Source: Piromyces finnis finn (lineage: Eukaryota > Fungi > Neocallimastigomycota). Taken from it: a DNA stretch of 21,857 nt. A model generated the notes under the pieces. That model made no database searches. It was not told where the DNA came from and saw only the letters and a list, made by a program, of their open reading frames with translations. This document shows positions 1 to 21,669 of this stretch, piece by piece. The first letter of the stretch is position 1, and every line of letters starts with the position of its first letter. The stretch covers positions 1-21,857 of the forward strand of contig MCFH01000167.1 of NCBI GenBank assembly GCA_002104945.1. The letters run 5' to 3'. A program made the translations under genes and the position numbers.

Positions 1-1866
1 AAAATCTAATTTTATAAAATTCAAAATCAAAATCTAATTTTGACAATAAATTTACTAATTCAAAATTAAAAGTAAATTTAAAACAAAGAGTTCTCAGGAT
101 CAAATAAACAAAAACATTAAACCTCCATTATTAGTTAAACCAAATTTATCAGCATTTAATAAAGCTTTAAAACAAACAAAATTAACATTTAGTACTAAAC
201 AAGGAAGAGAAAAAAGTAATGATAATTCTGTTAATAAAATTGAAGAAAATATTGAAGATGATTTTAGTGATTCAGGTACTTCTAATAGTTTCGATTCATT
301 CTCGAATTCAATAGATGATAGTTCATTTTTATTCTTTAATAATACAGATCATAATGTAAAAAACAATAATAGTCAAAATGATATATTTAATAATTTTCAT
401 TCAGAATTGGAAAGTTTTGAGGGAAATACATATTCAAAATCTAATAATGAAGATAATGAATTTACAATAAAAAATAATAGTCAAGGAAAAAACTAATGAA
501 AAAGTTCACTGAAGATAAAGAAAAAAAATTGTTAGATAAAAGGGATATCTTTGATATATTTAATGATAATAGCAATAGTAATTTGGAATTTAGTGATAAT
601 TTATCAGATAAATATAAAAATTATGAAGAGTCTCTTAGTCCAAAATTTAATCTTAATATATTTAATAATAAAAAAATTGTTGAAAATGATGATAGGTCAT
701 TTTATGAGGTTTCAGCAAGAAATATTTTTGAAGCAGAACTTTTATTAGAAGGAGAAAGTATTAAAGAGAGTTTGCAATTTGATGATAATTTTTATAATTT
801 TTCATTGAATAAAAAAATGTCGAAATACACTAAGCAAAACATTAATTCATTTATAGATGATGATAATAATTTGTATAAATATTCAAAAATTAACAATAAT
901 ATTAGCAATACAAAAAATAATTCAGTCAAAAAAGAAAAAAGAAAAATCACCCTACCGAATGATATCTGGAAAAAATAAAATTATTTAAATTTTAAAGAAA
1001 TACTATCAATGTCATGCACATCAAAGCAAATGAATAAGATTATACGTGAATTATATATATGGAAGAAAATCGATATATATTCTATTTTTAAGAATAACAA
1101 TATAAAAAATAAAAATAAATTTTTAGAAGAATTACTGAAATCAGTATATACATCAAAAATTGAAATATTAATATTTAACATTGATAAAGATATTCCTACA
1201 CCAAATATGATTTCATTAATTATTCAAAATTGTAAAAATTTAAAATCATTAATATTATCAGATACAAGTATTTCATTAAAACATTTCGAAAATAAATTCG
1301 AAAAAGGAGAAAGGTATTTTATTTTTTTATTTTTTTTTTTTTATTATGTTATATTAGCAATTAATAATAAGATAATCACAATAAAATTATTTAGTATATT
1401 TATATTAAATATTTATTTAAAATATAATAAATATATAATTAGGTTAAAATCATTGAAATATTTAAACATTAATAATTGTTATAATATAAATTATTCAACG
1501 TTAAAACATTTAGTAAATGGATGCCCTAATTTACTGAAACTTGAATGCTGCAATTTAAATTTAAAACCAGGCGAATTTGGTGTTATACAAGAATTACAAC
1601 ACTTGCAGTATCTAAACATATCAGGAAATAAATATTTATGTAATTTAGATATCAAAGCGATATATAACAAGGAAAATAATATCAAATATTTAGATATTTC
1701 AAATGCAATAGTTTAACTGATAGAGCTATATCCTTTATACTAAAAATGCACAAAATTTAGAAACCATAAAATTTATGGATCAAACATGCGAATAACTCAA
1801 AATAGCTTTTATTTATTAACAAAATTAAAGATACGGAACGTTGAATATCAAAAAAGAAACAAATAA
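1..1866 (+). CDS. F-box / leucine-rich-repeat (FBXL-like) protein, 5'-partial, frame-disrupted in this sequence
   Basis: Low-complexity N/S/D/E-rich N-terminus, then an F-box-like motif LPNDIWKK*NYLNFKEILSMSCTSKQMNKII (952-1041, in-frame TAA at 976-978). Cysteine-containing LRRs follow (NCKNLKSLILSDT, LKSLKYLNINNCYNI, GCPNLLKLECCNL, LQHLQYLNISGN). One GT-AG intron at 1314-1442. The last repeats (DISKCNSLTDRAISFILKNAQNLETIKIYGS...RNK*) read through only after adding single A's in A-runs near 1700, 1745 and 1770. Stop TAA at 1864-1866. Confidence 0.75.
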
Positions 1867-2490: not shown

Positions 2491-5400
2491 CTATTTATAT
2501 CTATTTTTTTTTGGTGGTATAACTTCATCAATATATTGACTAAATGCAATTTCAACTTTTTCCTTTTTTGAAATTGTCATTGTACTTGTTATATTTTGTT
2601 CTTGTTGCTCTTTAAAATCAATAGATGGTCTAATTATTGCTGATGCAAATGTTTAACTTTTAAATATTTTAATTATTAAATAATAATATTTAAATTTTAT
2701 AAAATATATTTGATTTAAAAGTTTTAAAAGTTAATATATATATATATAGCTTGAAAAATAATAACAAAAAAATAGCATTGAGGGTTTTATTACCTAGTTC
2801 ACTTTTTGAGATTAATTCATATGAAATAGTATCTCCTATGTAATATTATGTAATTTAATGTATTTGCATGACATGAAGGCAATGCAGAATATAACTATAT
2901 ATATACAAATAAGGAAATAAAATTATAATGATGATATATATAACAATAATTAAAGATATTAAGTGAATAAAATAGTTATTATATATAATATATTTATATT
3001 AATATTATGATTCATACTGTTTGGAATTTGGATCCGTATTTTTTAAAAATTTTCATAGGGAACTACTGCATTTGGAAATTCATATAAGAATTTCATTAAA
3101 ATTTCAGCCATAGAATTTATAGAAGGTAGTTTTCCTTGTCTTTTAACTATTTCAGCTATTTTTTGTTTTACAGCTTTCAATGAATAATTTTTATATATGA
3201 TTTCGTTGAGGTTAGTTTTTGACTCAGAAGATTGATAATCATAAAGACTTAATTTTTCCATTTTTGATATACTACTAATAGCTGAATCCATTGAATCCAT
3301 TGATGTTAAATTATCTAATGAATTTAAATATGAATCTGATAAACTTGATCTTCCAAAAAGTAATAAGTTATTATCAATATCAATATTGTTATTCAACAAT
3401 ATTTATATACTTTTTTATTATTATATTTCCATTATTGAATACATATTTCTTTTATGAATAGATAAATATATATATATATATATTTAAATATAAATTATTT
3501 AATTATTATTTAAATCATTATTACATTTATTTGCAATTATATATATATATATTTTTTTTTATATATTACCTCATCTCTACCATATTTTATCAAGAAATCA
3601 ATAACCACATATAAATTCTTAGGAATACATGAGATTTCTTCATTTTCTAACAATTCTTTTGTTTTCTCTGATAATTCCTTTTTATTACTTAATTCTAGTA
3701 TTGAATCCCATGGATAATAAGATAAAGGACGATTTATTTGGCATAAAGTTTCAATAGGAATACCAAACAAACTTGGAACAATTTCACTTTTCACATTTAT
3801 AAATATATCATTGCCATTTTTAACTTTTAATATGATTATTTCGTCAATTTTTTTTATTGATATTCCGGTTGTTACAGTTAAAGTAATATTAATTGTTTGA
3901 GATTCACCTTTTAATAATGTATTTTATTTTAATATTAATATTTATAAATTTTAATGTACACATATATATATAAACTATAAAATAATGGAATTTTATATTA
4001 TACCCGGATATATAGTATTTGATGATGGTTTTACTGATATCCATGGAAACGATAGCGATGTTTTATTATCATCTAATGATGTTACTAATTCATATGAGGA
4101 TAATACTTTTCCTTCATTTTTGATTATTAATGTTTTTGTAGTTGAAATATTATTGTTATAGTTCCAAAATCAACCAAAATCGATGATACTTTAATTACAG
4201 GAATACTGTCATTTTCATGATGATCAAGTTGTTTTATTAATTGAGAATATATCTCTGAGTATTTTTCAGTATTAATTTTTCTTACCTATTTATTTATAAT
4301 TAATATATAAGTATTAGAACATATATATTATTATATATGTTACAATTTAATAACAGTAATGTTGTTAAAAAAAAAATTAATTTTTTTATAAAAATAATAT
4401 ATACCCAAATTTCAAATTCAGAAATAATTGGTTTATGATCACTAATTGTTAATTCTCCATAAGAATTATAATTTTTGGGAATAATCCATTCATTATCCTC
4501 AATAGTAATTTTATTTGAAAATGATACTTCAGATGGTTTTAACGCATTTGATGCTTTATACCATTGTACTCTATCACAGAAAGCTGGTGCTCTCTTCTTT
4601 TCACTTTTTATAACAATAATTTTAGCAAAGTTAAAAGCCAAAATTTATATATAATAAATCAATTTACCTTGTATCGAATGTATTTGTTCCTATATCATAT
4701 TTATATGTTGGTTTAAAAGTGATTTTACTTTCATAAAAATCAGTAAATACTACCTGCTTAGCTTTTTCAATTAAAAGCTTAATAATAAAAGTTAATTGAA
4801 AATTTTTTCATTAATTTTAATATTTAAGTATTTTAAATATAATATATATATTTTATTAATTATATTAAAAATATACCTGATCAAATTCTAATAAATCCTC
4901 GATTTTCCCCTGATTAATATACTCTTTTATGACATCGCTATTATTATTAAGTCTATAATTCAAATCACCAAACCAAAATAATATACTAATTATTGCATAA
5001 TAGATAATAACAATAATATTAAGAATCGTATTAGAAAGTTCGTCACAATAAAGTATTATATTATATTAGTAATTTAAATAAAAAAATAACTTACTCATTA
5101 TCATATATTGAAAAATTAATTTTCATGTTTCCCTTTTCTTTAAGATTTTCTTGACATATATTATTTAACCATTTATTACTTGTAATATTAAATCTTAGCA
5201 TATTTTCAGTATAGAATTGCTCTTTATTAAATCCAGTTCCATTATAGAATCCATTAATATTATCTCTTGGAGGAATAAATGGAAATTGCAAATTTTTAGC
5301 AATATCTCTATAATCCTCATTTCTTCGTTGAACTTGCATGGTATCTGCTGCTAAATGTGAATTTACAAAACAAACATAAGAATCATATATCATCATACGA

Positions 5401-6906
5401 ATTCCTGATGCACCTTTATTTCCCATAATTCCCATTAAACCACATCCGATAAAGGATGTTGATACATTACTGATTACTTTTTTTAATTCTTTTCTTACGT
5501 ATACAAAAACGCATATGCCCACCATTTGCTGAGATGCTATCTTCATAGATTAATTATAATTGAAATGTAATATATTAATTTAAAGATTATTAAGTATAAT
5601 TTCCCCATATATTTATATTATAATAATTACTTTGACATATTTTTTATTAAGGCTATTTATTCCTTCCTCAATTTTTTCTGACCAGTGATTTTCTTTTTCA
5701 TTATTTGATACTATATATGCTTCCTTTGATAAATCCATTTCTTGAAGGCTTAAAAAATAAAATAAAATAAAATATATTTTAAATAAGATATTTTATTTTT
5801 TTTAGCATTATAAATTTCCTTAATATCTACCCTATAACATATATATCTGGAATTTTATGTTTATATGAATTTAACCATCCTTTCAAAGAACATTCTGGGT
5901 CTCTACCATTGACATTCCAAGTTCCAATAAATATACTATTCAAATATGTAGTTATATTAAACATTTCAAATTAAAATTATTTTTATTATTTATTATTTGA
6001 AAAAATATTAAAAAATATAGAAGTATCGAAAACTACTTTATTTTTTTTAAATCGGTAAATTTCGGTTGTTCTATTGCAAGTTGTTTTGATATCCAACATT
6101 CTCTTGATAAACGATAATTTAAAGTTATTTCTGAAGATAAGGGGTGAATGAAAGGATTTTCATCTGTCGTTGTCATACTTGAAACTACAAATTGGTTTAA
6201 TTGTTTAAATAATATAAATTATGAATATTTAAATCTTTGTAAGTTATTTATATTATAAATATTTAAAGTAACGTATGTACACTTTTCTTCTAAATCAGTT
6301 TTATATGCTTTATAATTATTTAACCAGTTGAATGAAAAATCTGGATAATATTCCTCATTTTCTTTTTTCACATATATGAAAATTAATATAATAAAATGAA
6401 AGAATATAAAATATAATAAAGTAAAAAATTAATTCATTTTTTAAAATTAATAAAATGAAATTTGAAATTTACACTATTATATAATACATACAATACATAT
6501 ATAAATATGGTTATGAAAATGATACTATACTTTTTTCCTCAACAATTCTTTCTAGTTTATATTTAAATTCTTTATAATTTTGTTGTTTTGTTGGAACTGT
6601 TATTTTTAAATCTGTGTTTTGTGATTTTAGTATCCATATTATATTATTTTCTGTAAATTTTTTTTCAATTGTAAATTTGAAATTTTCATCTATGGGTATT
6701 ACATTATATATAGATATCCCGAAAAAATTCTTCTCTAATAAAAAGAGACAATATTCATGAGTGGTAATATTTGAAACAATTGTTACTAAAATACTTTGTC
6801 CATATGAAATGGCCGTCAAATAAGCTGATTCTAATTTTTCATTAAGTCGAAGAATTGACTGAAATTTCTTTATTGCTTCTTTCTCTTTTTCTTTTTTAGT
6901 TTCCAT
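2491..6906 (-). CDS. OCRL: OCRL/INPP5B-family inositol polyphosphate 5-phosphatase (PH - 5-phosphatase - ASH - RhoGAP-like), multi-exon
   Basis: Spliced exons give an N-terminal PH-like region (VIPIDENF) and 5-phosphatase motifs IFIGTWNVNG, DIYVIGLQE, GLMGIMGNKG, FVNSHLAA, ILFWFGDLNYRL, TFKPTYKYD, PAFCDRVQW and SDHKPI. An ASH domain follows (ENDSIPVIKVS...NEGKV...PWISVKP), then PSLFGIPIETLC and a RhoGAP-like domain (INSMAEILMKFLYEFPNAVV, LPSCHANTLNYII, FASAIIRP). About five single-base frame disruptions lie between 2650 and 4160. OCRL and INPP5B cannot be told apart here. Confidence 0.92.
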
Positions 6907-7331
6907 TTTTATAGTTTTTAATTAGTTTATTAATAGTATATTTTCATTATAATATTGACTTATTTTTCTTCTGAAGTGTTATATTGTTTTGAAGGAATAT
7001 GAATAATAAAGGAAGGAGAAAAAGAGCATGTAAATTTTTAATTTGTAAATTGTATATTAAAAAGAGGCAAATACTTTTTGTTGGATTGAATTTATATAAA
7101 ATTTTCTTTTTTTAAAATATTTAATATAGATATATTAATTTTTTATTTTCCTAATTAAAAAGTTTCTAAAATACAATAATCTACATCAAATAATGGTAAA
7201 TGTATACAATAAATAAATTAATTAATTTTTTTTAAAATATATTTAATAAAATTACAATAATAAATTTCCTTTTATAGGTATAATTAATTTTTTTTATTTC
7301 GAAAAAAAGATTTTTAAATAGTAAAGGTAAA
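6907..7331. promoter_or_regulatory. Short divergent (head-to-head) intergenic region between OCRL-like and RSU1
   Basis: The two ATGs point away from each other 425 bp apart, so both promoters and 5' UTRs must fit here unless OCRL has an upstream exon. No specific motif identified. Confidence 0.5.
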
Positions 7332-8650
7332 ATGGGAAATAAATTACTAGATACTTTAGTTGAATCGAAGCCATCTGAAATCAATTTAAATGATAGAGGT
7401 TTAAAAGAATTTTCAGAAAGATTAAGTATGTAAAATTATATGAATATGTTACTATTTCAAAACATTTATATTTATATATATTTATATATATTAAGCAACA
7501 ATCACAGAATTGGAATCATTATATTTGTCAAACAATAAAATTAAAGGTATTTAATTCATAAAAATAATTTGAAGTATTTTTAATATATAGTTATCATATA
7601 AAGTATATTTTTATCGAAATAATAATATATATAATTAAACAATAATAACAGAAATACCTGAGAGTATTAGTAACATTAAAAAACTTTCTACATTAAATTT
7701 GTATCACAATAAAATAACAAAAATCCCTACAACTATCAATGCAATCTCATGTTTACGCTACTTAAACGTTAGGTATAAAGTAAAGAACAAAAAATTTAAT
7801 TATACTTTTAAAAATTATTAACAAAATTGTTATATATATATTTAAATTAAATAGTAACAATAATATTTCTGAAATACCAAGTGGTTTTGGTAGTTGTCCA
7901 AATCTTGAGGTTTTAGATTTAAGCTGTAATAATATTTCATCTATTCGTTCAAATTTCGGTTATTTAAGTAAATGATCATAATATATTATTAAGCTATTCA
8001 AAAAAATAATGCTTTATAATATTATTTATTCTTAAATGGAATTTTATATACAAATATAATAAAACGTTAATATAGCTACTTTAAAAGCTTTATATATGTC
8101 TGATAATAAAATTGAAACATTACCTCCGGAATTTACAAACTTAACAAAATTAGAAACTGTATACTATTAATAATAATTAAAATCAAAAAATTATTATTTT
8201 ATAATATTATATAATTTATTTTAATATACCTTTTAATAAATAATTATTACTAATGTAGATTTCATTAAGAAATAATAAATTAACATCATTGCCTGATAAT
8301 ATTGGAAAGCTAAAAAATTTGAAAGAATTTTTACTTCAAGGAAACAAATTGAAAGTTTTACCAATATCATTAAGTAATATTCAAAAAAAAAAAAAAAAAA
8401 AAAAAAAACAATTTATATTATTATATTGAATTATAAAAAAACAATAATTAAAATTATATATATTATATTTCATGTATTATAAAAATTAATATTAGGTGAT
8501 TGCCCATTAGTTGGTGAAAATAGATATTTAAAATTAGCAGGAAATCCATTACATAAAGATATAATAAATCAGTTAAATAAAGGAGGAACAGAAGCTCTAT
8601 TTGAATTAATGAAAAGTATTGAATATTATGATATTATAGAAAATAAATAA
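7332..8650 (+). CDS. RSU1: Ras suppressor protein 1 (RSU1)-like LRR protein, 243 aa, 7 exons
   Basis: Exons 7332-7425, 7496-7546, 7652-7772, 7855-7967, 8076-8158, 8259-8373 and 8496-8650 are all GT-AG and sum to 732 nt with no stop. Protein: MGNKLLDTLVESKPSEINLNDRGLKEFSERLTTITELESLYLSNNKIKEIPESISNIKKLSTLNLYHNKITKIPTTINAISCLRYLNVSNNNISEIPSGFGSCPNLEVLDLSCNNISSIRSNFGYLTTLKALYMSDNKIETLPPEFTNLTKLETISLRNNKLTSLPDNIGKLKNLKEFLLQGNKLKVLPISLSDCPLVGENRYLKLAGNPLHKDIINQLNKGGTEALFELMKSIEYYDIIENK. It is collinear with human RSU1 as recalled (DRG cap, GFGSLPALEVLDL, NFFYLTTLRALYLSDN, LSLRDN, KELHIQGN, C-cap). Confidence 0.88.
8383..8408. repeat. A26 homopolymer in RSU1 intron 6
   Basis: Read directly. Similar long runs occur at 14239-14261, ~16370, ~20620 and ~20800. 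Confidence 0.9.
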
Positions 8651-8991
8651 CAGCAGTATCAATAATTATATGATATTCTAAATATATCTATAATTTTTAT
8701 TATTATTTTATTAATATAATTTAAAAAATTATTTGGAATCTTTTTATAATAAATATAATTTTTAATATAGTCATACTAAATATTTTAAATCTTTAATATT
8801 TAAATGTTTTTTTAATTAATATATTTTTGTTTTCTTATTTTAATTTATATTAATACAAAAAATAAATATAAAAATAAAAAATAAAATAAATATAATAATT
8901 AAAAGGTTTATCTTTATTCTCATTCGTTAAAATTGTTATTATTATATGCATATATATTCTTTATTCTCTATATATTATTTTGATTTTATAA

Positions 8992-11900
8992 ATGAATATG
9001 GAAAATCCAAGTTACAAAAATCTAAATGCCAAAATATTTATTAAATACGTAAAAGATGTTATAAGAAATTCAAATAATTATAACGAAATAGAAAATTCTC
9101 TATTAAATGTTGAGAACAATGTTGATTTTTATGTAAATTTTAGAGAAATACAATATAGAGTTTTTTTTTTATTAAATATATAAACAAAATTTAAAATATT
9201 TTAATTGAAATTATTATTTTTTTGTGAAAATAGAATTTTTCATTAGTATCTTTTATAAAAGGGAAAATTGATATTTTATTACAAAATTTATCAAATAATG
9301 GTATTATTTTCTTTTTTTCTTTTTAAATATTTATATAATAAAATAAATTAAAATCATCTAAAGGATTTAAATTAATTATATTTCATAAATTTAAAGATAA
9401 TAATGTTATGGATTTTGAGGAGATTAAGAATCTAAAAGAATATAGGGTAGAATTTAAACATGTAATGAATGATATTGAAAATTACATATATCATATGATA
9501 AAAAGTAGAAAAATACAATTTAGAAATTTTGATAATTTAATATATGGTATATATATTTAATAATTTAGAAATGTTGAATTTGAAATTTGATTTTTAAATA
9601 ATTAAATTGAAATTTAATTTTAAATTAAATTTCAAAATCCATTATACATTTAATCAATTTTGAATGTCATTATTTATAAAACTATTTATATAAATGAAAA
9701 TGTCTTTAAAGAAAAAACATTTAGTGAATCAAAGAGTGAAGGAAATTTTAAAGAGAAAATTATCATTTTAAAAGTAAATATTATTAATGATAATATAAAT
9801 TTTGATTATGAATTATATGACTTTGTTATTTTTAATAAAAAACATATATATATTTTTTTATTCTTTTTAATTATGTAGCAACTTAATTCACTCTCAATTA
9901 ATGATTTGCTTTCTGAGGAAATATGGCCAAAAGTTAAATTTGTATTAAAAAGAGTTGTTAACGATAAAGAAATAATGTAGACTTTTACTTAATATATATG
10001 TTAAAAAAAATTATAATAACTATGGTTTTTATGATTAATTATATTATTTATTTAAAAGAATTGTAGATGAATACTTAAAACTTTACGAAAAATTGATTAA
10101 TATGGAAAATATCCAGGAATTAAATAATTTATTTATAAATTTTTGTCAGTGTTTAATAGAGAATAATAAGATAAAAATTACAGTTGAAAAAAAAGATGTG
10201 TCATCTATGCTTTATTTTAATTTAAATGAACCACAAAACATAATATGGATGAAAAAAGTAAATAGTTTTTGTTTTTATTAGAATAAGCATTAAAATCAAA
10301 ATCTATTAATATTAATATTAAAAATACATCAATATAAATTATATATATTTGAATAGATGAAGTATTTATTAAAATTCCAAAAGATGATTCTTTTAAATTA
10401 TTACAAAATACCGAATGAAAGTCTTCGTGAATCCATTTTTATTTTACTAAAATTATTGTTTGTTCCTTATAATAATTCAATGAAAAACAGTTACTTTATC
10501 CCTATACATATATTAAGTTTGTTAGATCCAAAATCTGAATGGATAAAATTGTGGATAAACAATGCACTATGTTTATCTTTTATAACTGAGTTTTTTCAAC
10601 AGGAGGAGAATATTAATAATATAATATCAAATGTATTATGCTATTATGATAATGTTTATGAAACAAATAATGTTAAAGTAACAAGAAATAATCTTTTGCT
10701 TTCGTCTGTTGTTAATCAAGGTTTAATACCTGTTGATTATATAAGACATATTTTTTTCCTTCAAAATCTTTTTATTTTGACAAAAGTTTCATCTACTTTT
10801 AATGGTAATAAATTATTTCCTATAATTATTAAAAAATCAATAGAAAATGAACATGAGTTAAAAATCAAACACCATTTCAATGAAAAAGAAGGTAATAAAA
10901 TTAATATATGTATTTTTTTAGAGTAAAATATTATTTACGAAATAAAATAGGATATTCATATATATAATTTTAAATCGTTTTTTTTTATAGATGACTTTAT
11001 CATGGAATATAATAATTTTTTAGAAATAGTTTTTTCCTTATTCTATAAAAATACATGTATTAATTATGTACAACAGATAAAGCACAGAAATATAGCATGT
11101 TTTTCAATTTCAGATTATCTAAGTGAAATGTTTAATGCAAATCCGCATAATTGCTTTTTTATACAAAAAATAATAGAAAATGTAACAATATTTATTAATT
11201 TATAGTTTATTAATGTATTTATTAATTAATATCAATTAAATTCATTTTAGGATAATTGTAAAAAATCCATTTTACAGCCTTTAGATTTTTATGAGAAATT
11301 AGATATGAATGAAAAAAGAAATTTTTTTTCATACTATAGTTTTATTGGGAATATATTAAACCAAATTATAGACAAACTATCCATAATAGAATTTTATAAT
11401 ACTTTTTGCTATATAAATAATAATATATGCACTCAGTATAAATATGATATAAATTATATATTGTATGAAAGATCATATAAAAATATAGAATCAAAATCGG
11501 AAACTATATACTTTGACATAATAGAAAAATTTATTATACACATAATAAGAGATAACTACAAAGATAACATACAATATAATAACATTATATCTGTATATTT
11601 TAATATACTTAAAAAAATGGTATCAACATCTTATGGTTATATGGCTTTAAAAAGGTATAATATATTGGAAAAGCTGTTAAATATATATAAGGAAGAAAAA
11701 GATGATAGTAAGAAATCAATATTTCTAAAATGTATAATTGATTATTCCGCTTCTACACGAGGATTATCTGATTTAATATTAATGAATCATGACATTAAAG
11801 ATTCAATTATAAAATACATTAATCTACCAAACATGAATATTTTATATATCATAAATATTTTTAATGAAGTAACTGATACTGAACTAATGAGGAATATTTA

Positions 11901-14027
11901 TGATTTTAAATTTATCAAAAACATTGTTAATATATTACATAAAACTATATACAATGAATCAGATATCCTTTTTTAATTATAAATCTAATAATACTAAATG
12001 TTTATAATTTTTATATTTCTTTAACCTTTTTTTTGTTTTATTTCGTATAAATACATAAGGAAATATCCGAAATTTCATTGGATTTTTTGAACAATACTTT
12101 TTTATATAATGTTTTATCATATCAAAATATAAGATCTATATTGTCTTTAGAAAAAATGAATTCAAATAATGATAGTCATAATTATTTGTCAAATTTAATT
12201 CAATTAATTCTACAGAAATCTTCAATGAATAATAAAATTAATATTAAAGTAGATGAATTATAAGAAGTTTTTCAAATAATTTATAAATCATTGTAATAAT
12301 AATATATATATATAAATAATATAATATAATATAGATGATATTATTTTTAAAAATATTATTCCAATTATCTTTGGACTCGATACTTATTCTCGAATCTGAA
12401 CTTGATATTAGAAAATTAATATCGAATAAACTAGAATACTTTAATTGTAATTTTCATTATAAAATATGTTACAAATTATATATATTTATTTTAAAATCAA
12501 TTTATAATTAAAATAACATATTTTTTTTTATTTTACTTATAAAATTTATTCACAACTTCTTGTAAGACTCAAATGAAGTAAAAAGTTTAGAGGGCGTATT
12601 AATAGATAATATATTCAATTCTATAAAAATAATAGGAAATAATTCAAGATTTAGCCAAAACATTATTAATAATAATTGTAATAATGCATCAGAAATTTCG
12701 GAATACAATAACATCATAGGTTCATTAGATGATGGTATATTAGACCCATCATTATGGTTAAATAAAGCTCAGGTAAGAAGTTGAATATTTTAAACTAAAT
12801 CAAACATTATATTTGTTTAAAAGGAATTATAAATTAACATTTTTATTTAAAATTTTTTTAAACATATTATTATGCTTATAGATAAAATACATTGAATTCT
12901 TAAATAAAAATCCATCTCCTGTTAATGTTATTTCTTTTGCTTCATGTCATCTTTTAAAAATAGTAAATAATATTGTTAAACTTAATGTACATGATAAAGT
13001 TCCTGGTTGGTCAAAAATTCAACTGTTAAAGTATAAAAAACTATATGGAAAAATCTCATTTCATGTAAATTTATATTGTTATAAGAATAATCATATATTT
13101 AATTATAATTTATAAAAATTAATATATTCTTTTTTTACATATTCTAAAATTTAATATTTGATCTTTTAATGTAGAAAAAAATAAAAAATAATGGAATAAA
13201 TAAGATTTTAGATTATTATAAAAGAAATTTTAATATTACCAATAATTCATTACTTGAAAACCAAAAAGAGAATTTAAATGATTTATTAAACGAAGTAGAA
13301 AAAGTATTAAAATCCAAATATGACTTTTCATTAAAATCTAATGGTTTTTTTTCATCATTTGACTGGTTTACTTCTTTCATTTTTTGTATAATACCTGAAC
13401 TTGATAATGCCAAAGAATTTATTCAAAAATTGAGTGAAACTGAATTTTCAATTTTTATGTGGTCATTTTCTCATAATCTTTCTTTAAATGAACAAAATAT
13501 ATCTTATCCTGTTATTTATTATACTTTATGTAATTATGTTGAGCTAATATTAGACAAAGAACTACCGTTAATGTCTTCTATATTAAAAATTAATGAAATC
13601 AATTTGATAAATGTAAAATAGTATATAATTTTATTTTTTAAATAATTTTAATAATACTTATTTAATTTATAATAATATATTTATAAAGGTTATTCAAAAA
13701 TGGTATAGAGAACTCTTTCTGAATATACTAGATATAAAACAGATAACTGAATGCATAATATTAATTTTTCTTTTTGGTTTAGATTATTATGTATATTATG
13801 TCATCTCATTATTTAAACACATACATCCTACTCTCCTTGAACTTAATCAACAAAAATTTTTAAAACCTTTTTTATATTTAGATGATACTTATTTGATACC
13901 TATATATCAAGTATCTTATTGTTCATATAATTTAAATAACTATTTTAAATATATGCAAAATCTACAATTAAAATATAGAAATTTTATTTTTAATGACATA
14001 CAACAAGTATTATATTCTTCTAATTAA
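8992..14027 (+). CDS. TBC1D32: Broad-minded (BROMI/TBC1D32) orthologue, ciliary CCRK/CDK20 partner with a C-terminal TBC-like domain, multi-exon
   Basis: Exons follow recalled human BROMI from start to end: DFYNFSLVSFIKGKI, SINDLLSEEIWPKV, IPIHILSLLDPKSEWIKLW, HIFFLQNLFILTKVSSTFNGNKLFPIIIK, STSYGYMALKRYN, DYSASTRGL, SLDSILILESE, FDWFTSFIF, YPVIYYTLCNYVELILDKELPL. The last exon (13689-14027) reads VIQKWYRELFLNILD...FGLDYYVYYVISLFKH...NYFKYMQNLQLKYR. Exon 1 is 8992-9132 and exon 2 is 9234-9300; boundaries around 9550-9880 are uncertain. Confidence 0.88.
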
Positions 14028-14388: not shown

Positions 14389-15381
14389 TTATTCAGCTTT
14401 TTCTTCAGCCTTTTCTTCAGCCTTTTCTTCAGTCTTTTCTTCAGCCTTTTCTTCAGCTGGGGCAGCATCAGCCTTTGGTTCATCATTTAAACAATACTTT
14501 GGTGGCCATGAGACATCTTTAGTGTATTGTTCTTCCTTCCATGGTCCTGGATCGGTTCTAGAACATCCACCAGTACATTCTGGACATTCACAAGTACCAC
14601 CAAGGAACTTAGGGAAGTTTTCTTTATCAATAACCTTGAAGATTTCACTTTCATATTTACCACCTAAAATCTTAATCTTCTTAACAGTAACTGGATCAAG
14701 AAGTGGTGTGATTAATTTCCATGTAGAAGTGAAGAGCATTGGAGCATTAATAATAAACATTTGACCAAGCATTTCTGGGTAGTAATCTTGAGCAATAGCA
14801 CTACTACTCTTAATGAAACTGAAAGCTTTAGCAAATTGGAAAAGACCAACCTTCTTTAAATCCATAATAGTACAACTGGTTTCAATGTGGTATCCAGCTC
14901 TGTTTGAGCAAGCTGGGAAACGAGTATGAATGAGTTTTTCATATTCATAAACGTGGTGATTAATCATTTTTTCTTCAGTGGTAACATTGAAAAGTTTCTT
15001 TAAATCTAATGGACCAAGTTGTTCGATGTAAATTGGTCTACCGTATTTATCAACCTTGTGATAGAAACGTGGGTAAAGTTTGTGAACTTCTTCTTCTTCT
15101 GGGAATTCAAAGTTTTTACATAAATCTTTAATTTTAATGCTTTCTCTCCACTTTTCACAGTTAGAAAACATTTCGTAGGTTTTAGTAAGGTTAAAATCTC
15201 TAGCACGGAGGAAACGTAATAATAAATAATCATTATGTTCTTCTTCCTTAAATTCATTCTTTTCTTTTAACATAGCTTTGAAATCATCTAAAGCTTTTTT
15301 TTGTTCTTCAGTTAAATTTTCAAGAGATCCTGGTTTTGGTTCTGGAATGAGAACTTCAACCTTGTTAGCTTCTTCGGCCAT
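14389..15381 (-). CDS. SEC14: Sec14 phosphatidylinositol/phosphatidylcholine transfer protein (CRAL-TRIO), 330 aa, intronless
   Basis: Motifs LLRFLRARDF, YPRFYHKVDKYGRPIYIEQLG, ETSCTIMDLK, QDYYPEMLG..FIINAP, LDPVTVKKIKILG and PKFLGG. Start placed at the second Met (MAEEANK, 15381) because the upstream 21 codons are an (AAT)n repeat. GC is higher than in the neighbouring genes, with many TTC/AAG/GCT/CCA codons. Confidence 0.96.
   Translation of the reverse strand: MAEEANKVEVLIPEPKPGSLENLTEEQKKALDDFKAMLKEKNEFKEEEHNDYLLLRFLRARDFNLTKTYEMFSNCEKWRESIKIKDLCKNFEFPEEEEVHKLYPRFYHKVDKYGRPIYIEQLGPLDLKKLFNVTTEEKMINHHVYEYEKLIHTRFPACSNRAGYHIETSCTIMDLKKVGLFQFAKAFSFIKSSSAIAQDYYPEMLGQMFIINAPMLFTSTWKLITPLLDPVTVKKIKILGGKYESEIFKVIDKENFPKFLGGTCECPECTGGCSRTDPGPWKEEQYTKDVSWPPKYCLNDEPKADAAPAEEKAEEKTEEKAEEKAEEKAE
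14392..14457 (-). repeat. Coding 12-nt tandem repeat giving an (EEKA/EEKT)x5 acidic-basic tail on Sec14
   Basis: The + strand shows a ttcagccttttc-type unit repeated about 5 times; it translates as AEEKAEEKTEEKAEEKAEEKAE*. Confidence 0.9.
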
Positions 15382-15389
15382 TATTCTAT

Positions 15390-15391
<2 letters not shown>

Positions 15392-15432
<41 letters not shown>

Positions 15433-15438
15433 TAACAA
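15392..15438. repeat. (AAT)n microsatellite upstream of the SEC14 start
   Basis: aataataat... run with aac variants, read directly. Confidence 0.9.
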
Positions 15439-17148
15439 TTCCATAATTAATATTTTTACTATTAATTAATTAATTATTTTTTTTTATTTCATTTTTTGAA
15501 TATATATATATATATATGGAAATATAATAATAATAATAAAAGTATAAATTTGTATTTATAATTTATCAATAATATTTTATTATAATGCTATTGTTATAAT
15601 TCAGTAATAATCATTTTTTTTAAAAAGTTATAATTAATATTTATATACTCATCAATTATTTATATAATTAATACATATTATCTTTATTATTTAACTATTT
15701 TTTCTTTTTATATATATCATTTTAGCCTTTATGTAATTTTTCTTTCTTGTTTATAAAACGAAAAACAACTATATAATTTATAATATTTAATAATAAAAGA
15801 AATCAATTTCGGATTATTTTTTATACCTTAATATTTATTTATTGTTTTTAATAAAATATTTAACTGTATTTTATTGTTATATTTATTTATTTTTTTTATT
15901 ATTATTTTATTTTTCTCTTTTTTCTATTATTATTAATATTTAAAACTGTTAAATTAATAACAATTCTGGTATAGTTTAAAAAAAAAAAAAGAATAAAAGA
16001 AAATAGTTAAAAGTTATATTAAAAATTAACAGATTAAATATATTAATTTATTATAATAAATAAAATTTACCTATTAAAAAATTACCTATAATTATATATT
16101 ATTTATATACAATTAAGAAATCTTAATTTTATTTATTAATAAAACAAATTATTATTGTTGTTTTTTATTATAATATATTGACAAGTTGATGGATGATTTA
16201 TATTTAATTTTCATTGATTAAAATAATGATTTAAAATTTATGTAAATGTATTTATATTAACAAATAACCTTGATATCAATGCATAAATAACTATTATTTT
16301 AAATAAATTATTAATAACTTTATTAGATGAGTAAAAAGTAAAAATAAAAAATAGTTTGAACTTAATCCTTTTTTTTTTTTTTTTTTATTATTTTATTTAT
16401 TTATTATTATTTCTACATTGACATAAGACATAATCTAAATAAATAGTAATAAATAATAATAAACTAAAAAAAGTATGGTTGAAATATAAAGATTTGTGAT
16501 AATTACACCATATCTATATTGGTAACAGATCTTATTTAACTTTTTTAAATAATATGATTATACCAAAAATAATATCTATTTATTTATATTAAATCTGGGG
16601 AATAAAAAATAAGGTTTTATAATGTATGAATATGAAAAACAAAAAACGAAAAATAAAACAAAAATAAAAATTATTAAAAACGTTATTTATATGTATTACT
16701 TTTTTCTTTTTATCCCATTTTAAAATAATAAATTATAATTATGAATGAATGAAAAGTAAATAAATGAATAGCTATATAATATTAATTATATTAAACGATA
16801 TTGAACGATATTGAAATTATTGGATATGTCATATGTAATTATAAATGATTATCAGAAAATTAATAGGTTTTATTATTATTTTATTTTGAAATATAATATA
16901 ACCGCAACTAAAACAAAAAAAAAAAAAACAAAATAAAAAAGAAATTTACTTTAATGAAATATACATTTTTTTTCTAGTGGGGTATATAATAGTAATAATT
17001 ATTAACAAATTATAATTTCTTTTTTTTTTTAGGTATTTAACTTTTTTTTTTTTTTTGAGAAAAGTATAATCATTAATACATCCATGAATTATATGAATTA
17101 TGTATACATATTAAGTTTGTATATTTTATATTTTATGTATACACATTT

Positions 17149-21669
<4,521 letters not shown>

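Follow-up and report, generated by a model that had tools for sequence, protein, structure and literature searches.

Does a fungus that, unlike the host of human RSU1, has no canonical integrins nonetheless encode a protein of this family, and what might such a protein do there? This question is raised by a gene on the forward strand (7332-8650) of a 21,857-nucleotide stretch of Piromyces finnis DNA, contig MCFH01000167.1, which was analysed at its full length and is referred to below as the window. Animals as distant as human, worm and fly have a conserved RSU1 (PMC7909951; PMC8141872). Outside animals we found no mention of it in the literature searched, which concerned fungi, unicellular relatives and Dictyostelium, and an amoebozoan adhesome survey does not mention it either.

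When seven small exons are joined, they yield 732 nt, that is 243 codons and a TAA stop, without any internal stop. GT..AG borders define all six introns, which measure 70-122 nt and have a GC content of 7-14%, compared with 21-27% in the exons and approximately 18% across the gene region. The transcript is composed of the following parts:

7287-7331, forward strand: 5' untranslated region; 7287 is where the longest transcript contig starts (record starts at 7287, 7293, 7307 and 7317)
7332-7425, forward strand: exon 1, with the start codon, the N-cap helix and the first LRR (aa 1-31 and base 1 of codon 32)
7496-7546, forward strand: exon 2, with the LRR2 strand (aa 32-49, a split codon at each end); contig piece 7499-7544
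7652-7772, forward strand: exon 3, LRR2-LRR4, with N64 at 7696-7698 and Y66 at 7702-7704; borders at contig joints
7855-7967, forward strand: exon 4, LRR4-LRR5, with D110 at 7916-7918; borders at contig joints
8076-8158, forward strand: exon 5, LRR6, with K130, Y133 at 8093-8095 and D136 at 8102-8104; borders at contig joints
8259-8373, forward strand: exon 6, LRR7-LRR8, with R158 at 8268-8270 and N159 at 8271-8273; borders at contig joints
8496-8650, forward strand: exon 7, with a partial LRR9, the helical C-cap and the TAA stop; seen in the contigs and in L001 (see below)
8651-8775, forward strand: 3' untranslated region; contigs end at 8773-8775

The encoded protein contains seven canonical LxxLxLxxN repeats with a 23-residue period, in addition to a degenerate first and a partial last repeat. 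A preliminary description of this DNA had proposed an intact seven-exon gene for a 243-aa LRR protein, and the GT..AG joins, the uninterrupted frame and the spliced contigs discussed below bear this out. It had also described the gene as invisible to the ORF track; indeed, the gene is absent from the ORF list of the window because no ORF of at least 70 aa overlaps it. The three motifs named there are all found in the spliced protein: LEVLD at aa 106-110, ALYMSD at aa 131-136 and ISLRN at aa 155-159. Within intron 6 there is a run of approximately 27 A residues (8383-8409), probably an AT-rich simple repeat and non-coding.

Three studies provide the four public runs in which the spliced form occurs, with one contig of 750-900 nt per run that is divided into seven pieces ending at the exon borders. 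In these contigs, introns 2-5 are seen as GT..AG joints; introns 1 and 6 lie within masked simple repeats, and the record coordinates are contiguous across both. The three record letters preceding the contig piece of exon 2 (7499-7544) also sit in a masked repeat, and the lone mismatch, where the last contig piece begins, is compatible with the junction 8373/8496. From the contigs, the transcript extends from approximately 7287 to approximately 8775. The RNA origin of the four runs is a guess: we read them as RNA because the presence of a spliced form in assembled contigs would otherwise be hard to explain.

Additionally, a search of JGI metagenome contigs with exon 7 identified a metatranscriptome contig of 1,293 nt, here called L001, with an uninterrupted 243-aa ORF at 327-1058. 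The L001 protein is 85% identical to the window protein, and 88% identical over exon 7. Compared exon by exon, the two have the same residue in 203 of the 239 whole codons; 57 codons differ synonymously only and 36 change the residue, which indicates purifying selection. Judging from this likeness, L001 is the mRNA of the same gene from a second, related gut-fungal species. The gene is real, transcribed, spliced as predicted and under purifying selection. In its 5' leader (30-245, forward strand) L001 also holds a 71-aa ORF rich in Lys, Arg and Glu, most likely a purine-rich low-complexity leader and no gene.

An exhaustive representative search of a large protein collection with exon 7 returned neither RSU1 nor a fungal orthologue, although such a short query has little power, and the sole match (P0001), a repetitive protein of 4,202 aa, was rejected as a chance match. 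Word searches with the L001 protein, at full length and with residues 95-200, returned only generic LRR proteins at 38-47% local identity; they gave no RSU1 and no gut-fungal orthologue even though gut-fungal proteomes are in the collection, candidates being picked by shared exact words and the power of the search therefore being low. By exact look-up, neither the L001 protein nor the Sec14 neighbour of the window gene is present in the collection. Since the word search of a collection with gut-fungal proteins found no close match, the gene may be missing from annotations. This suggests that it is unannotated or mis-modelled in public gut-fungal annotations, the very small size of its exons being the probable reason.

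The RSU1-like gene is surrounded by ordinary genes of a fungus, including ciliary ones, with no functional link to RSU1. Elsewhere in the window we observed:

3043-3794, reverse strand: ORFs downstream of the 5-phosphatase-type gene on the next line, of which they may be the C-terminal part
4300-6906, reverse strand: gene of several exons whose product has an inositol-polyphosphate 5-phosphatase-type domain (Pfam Exo_endo_phos2, matched in 5091-5546 at E 6e-24 and in 4300-4641 at E 7e-6)
10357-11976, forward strand: ORF piece matching Pfam BROMI (E 7e-7, above the curated cutoff)
14389-15444, reverse strand: intronless Sec14/CRAL-TRIO gene, 93% identical to Piromyces finnis, 88% to Anaeromyces robustus and 86% to Neocallimastix californiae
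18633-19190, reverse strand: ORF piece matching the CEP76 peptidase-like domain (E 4e-6, narrowly missing the curated cutoff)
19223-19726, reverse strand: poly-Ile, poly-Tyr and poly-Leu ORF, probably an AT-rich simple repeat and non-coding

BROMI corresponds to Broad-minded/TBC1D32, a ciliary protein, and is compatible with a flagellated zoosporic fungus. The Sec14 ORF, with its poly-Leu start and C-terminal AEEK repeats, extends beyond its relatives of 258-320 aa, and therefore its true start may be an internal Met; at this gene the GC content rises to 26-31%. From the 86-93% identity of the Sec14 gene to proteins of the three gut-fungal genera, the window belongs to an anaerobic gut fungus of the Neocallimastigomycota. 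Scanning the window for Rfam families and tRNA genes detected nothing.

To which LRR family does the protein belong? Full-length searches and the fold model used the L001 protein, while the window protein was searched exon by exon; the PDB comparisons cover proteins with a solved structure, which none of LRRC57, LRRC40, LRRC30 and PIRL has. In the PDB, human RSU1 is aligned by HMMER as one stretch (L001 residues 4-236 to chain 10-245, 179.7 bits, E 6.6e-52) and is the sole solved protein aligned end to end in a single stretch. LRRD1 and SHOC2 reach higher total HMMER scores, each a sum over four or five overlapping stretches none of which exceeds 68 bits, and the SHOC2 total exceeds that of RSU1 because SHOC2 repeats are many. 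Foldseek places human RSU1 entries at ranks 1-4 (E approximately 1e-13, 40-42% identity over 231-242 columns), followed by LRRC8A (approximately 30%) and SHOC2 (25-29%), with all non-RSU1 LRR proteins at 31% or less. Among the language-model neighbours in the Atlas, the RSU1 cluster comes first (0.98, with 199 of 256 features shared) and LRRC30, CG3040 and LRRC57 are the runners-up at 0.96-0.97. RSU1 is the closest characterised relative, and on this point the single-stretch score, the Foldseek ranks and the Atlas ranking all agree with what had been proposed from the letters.

The exon-wise comparisons follow the same order along the chain. Searched singly against the PDB, exons 4, 5 and 6 each match the positionally equivalent RSU1 repeat, and for exon 5 the best single stretch (22.2 bits) is the colinear RSU1 repeat. 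Residues 1-39 of exon 3 align ungapped with RSU1 chain 60-98 and residues 1-36 of exon 6 with chain 167-202, and RSU1 is the sole chain to cover residues 2-37 of exon 4 in one stretch. The best summed totals for exons 3, 4 and 6 belong to SHOC2, plant receptor kinases or Leptospira LRR proteins. Pfam finds generic LRR families in exons 3-6 only and no other domain; exons 1 and 7 matched no Pfam family. The preliminary description had extended the RSU1 match to the N- and C-caps, which stands for the longer queries but not for the cap exons alone. With the C-terminal 59 aa, RSU1 is the sole PDB match and is colinear (chain 196-245), at a weak E of 0.27; with the N-terminal 45 aa, RSU1 is matched from residue 4 (E 0.02-0.06) among many LRR matches. 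Exon 1 alone and exon 7 alone gave zero matches in the PDB, as queries too short to be informative.

A single-sequence AlphaFold2 model of the L001 protein (mean pLDDT 71, pTM 0.72) shows a helix at aa 4-12, a strand at 16-19, nine strands in total with flanking helices, and C-terminal helices at 212-221 and 224-233, the C-cap being poorly modelled (pLDDT below 50). With its N-cap helix, its nine LRRs and a helical C-cap, the last at low model confidence, the protein has the RSU1 layout for a chain of approximately 240-280 aa: RSU1 is described with nine LRRs plus an N-cap and a C-cap (PMC7909951). The fold itself was dropped as a discriminator, given that all LRR solenoids tie. VIA-align Z-scores of 20-23 are alike for RSU1, SHOC2, Leptospira LRR proteins and LRRC8, and in the Atlas shape search RSU1 is tied with soc-2 at a TM of approximately 0.76. 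Since the shapes tie, only the sequence identity within structural alignments is informative.

Set beside human RSU1 (7LT8, 7LT9, 7D2S, 7D2T), the fungal protein has the same succession of N-cap helix, nine LRRs and helical C-cap, and the two share 40-42% identity over approximately 235 residues in one colinear alignment. The fungal protein (243 aa) is shorter than the human one (277 aa) because it is without the basic, lysine-rich C-terminal tail; moreover, its LRR1 and LRR5 loops are two residues shorter each. SHOC2/SOC-2, a Ras-PP1 scaffold, has the same repeat type and 23-residue period, and its single repeats align well. Nevertheless, SHOC2 has approximately 20 LRRs and a long N-terminal region, whereas the fungal protein has nine repeats in 243 aa, and between the two there is no cap-to-cap alignment and no match of the C-cap. 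The N-terminal region of SHOC2 contains an RVxF motif, and SHOC2 scaffolds MRAS and PP1C. Membership of the SHOC2 group was rejected on the basis of the mere nine repeats, the lack of an N-terminal extension and the 25-29% identity. LRRC57 and related small cytosolic LRR proteins are similar in length (approximately 240 aa) and likewise cytosolic, with a language-model score of 0.96-0.97; they stand below RSU1 in the Atlas ranking. The fungal protein is very probably an RSU1-family orthologue, orthology in the strict sense being inferred.

If the family is RSU1, does the surface that contacts PINCH persist? The tested contact residues of RSU1 are N69, F71, D115, R137, Y140, D143 and R165; the Y140K substitution lowers the affinity approximately 100-fold, and D115K/Y140K abolishes binding (PMC7909951). 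F71, R165 (salt bridge with PINCH D295) and D166 (salt bridge with PINCH R314) are stressed in PMC8141872. With the residue numbering of these two papers, and with R, Y and D of the exon 5 alignment at chain index 142, 145 and 148 (offset +5 in 7D2S, +3 in 7LT8), the human positions and their fungal equivalents are:

Human N69: N64, identical
Human F71: Y66, conservative
Human D115: D110, identical, assuming the two-residue LRR5 gap in the post-strand loop, as the paper describes
Human R137: K130, conservative
Human Y140: Y133, identical
Human D143: D136, identical
Human R165: R158, identical
Human D166: N159, changed

Five of the eight contact residues are therefore identical to human RSU1, two are conservative and one is changed, and all eight positions are unchanged in L001. 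The concave-face equivalents named at the outset (D115, Y140, D143 and R165) are conserved, while F71, R137 and D166 are not identical.

The setting in which such a surface would operate has been described in part. Orpinomyces C1A has genes for alpha-actinin, talin, paxillin, vinculin and the ILK-PINCH-parvin complex but none for integrin, FAK or Src, and other Neocallimastigomycota follow the same pattern (Calkins and Youssef, 2016; PMC5042518). The earlier statement that early-branching fungi are known to have no more than scattered parts of the adhesome does not hold as worded, as all the scaffold proteins and the ILK-PINCH-parvin complex had been reported there, and with the complex published in 2016 (PMC5042518) the inference of such a module is not new. 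That toolkit comes from the fungal group of the window gene and covers the pathway in question, and RSU1 is unmentioned in it (PMC5042518); RSU1 would be an added regulatory subunit of this published set. The most likely mechanism, by analogy with human RSU1 and PINCH1, would be binding of the last LIM domain and the C-terminal helix of a fungal PINCH by the concave beta-sheet face. This contact would adjust the way in which the ILK-PINCH-parvin complex engages actin and bundles it, in cells without canonical integrins. PINCH binding, and any cellular role along with it, is put forward by analogy, and the suggested roles in crawling of zoospores, in encystment and in the attachment of rhizoids are speculation. 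Taken as a whole, a transcribed Neocallimastigomycota gene for a 243-aa cytosolic RSU1-family LRR protein, with a mechanism that homology would supply, is the reading we consider likely. The chances seem evenly balanced that the RSU1-PINCH pair belonged to the ILK-PINCH-parvin machinery of the fungus-animal ancestor and still works without canonical integrins in gut fungi, perhaps under a different membrane receptor.

How do other explanations compare? The likeness to RSU1 could come from repeat consensus and size, the protein being a member of another small cytosolic Ras-group LRR family (LRRC57, LRRC30, PIRL or a short SHOC2 relative) with a different partner. The total HMMER scores of LRRD1 and SHOC2 above that of RSU1, the best totals of exons 3, 4 and 6, which go to the other proteins named above, the structural Z-scores tied between RSU1 and other LRR proteins, and the close Atlas neighbours LRRC30, CG3040 and LRRC57 (0.96-0.97) would all fit, as would the MGN start and a DRGL-x-EF motif, which we take to be reminiscent of LRRC57. 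However, the higher totals are summed repeats, whereas RSU1 alone is colinear from cap to cap with an equal repeat count; identity is 40-42% to RSU1 and at most 31% to the others, RSU1 is the sole PDB match of the C-cap, and it best matches the atypical LRR5-LRR6 stretch as a single stretch. Another LRR family therefore appears unlikely. Concerning the MGN start, N-myristoylation was considered and dropped: this modification usually requires a small residue at position 6, which here is Leu or Ile.

Slightly more credible, though still improbable, is a true RSU1 orthologue whose working link to PINCH was lost or never existed: an orphan scaffold that would bind some other ligand, by its concave or its convex face, in a lineage from which integrins were lost. 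The replacement of D166 by Asn and of F71 by Tyr would agree with this, as would the absence of integrins, FAK and Src from these fungi (PMC5042518) and the second conserved surface of RSU1, on the convex side, which may bind other partners (PMC7909951). Against it, five of the eight contacts are identical and two conservative, the D115 and Y140 pair is kept, and PINCH, ILK and parvin are retained in Neocallimastigomycota (PMC5042518). Finally, the gene could have been acquired recently from the animal host, or the assembly could be contaminated with animal DNA, given that all descriptions of RSU1 so far are from animals. The protein is only 40-42% identical to human RSU1, though, and the exons (21-27% GC) with their six short AT-rich introns resemble the rest of the window. 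The gene is flanked by fungal genes, among them the Sec14 neighbour, which is 86-93% identical to Neocallimastigomycota proteins, and an orthologue occurs in a second gut-fungal species (L001). Horizontal gene transfer is a known feature of gut fungi, but in this case we regard an animal origin as highly improbable.

Our preferred reading remains an RSU1-family protein of gut fungi that may act with PINCH. With the core complex already reported in gut fungi in 2016, the gain is incremental. Nonetheless, if the protein is an orthologue, the origin of this ILK-PINCH-parvin regulator moves back to the fungus-animal ancestor at least, and gut fungi would offer a simple system for asking what the ILK-PINCH-parvin complex does without integrins.
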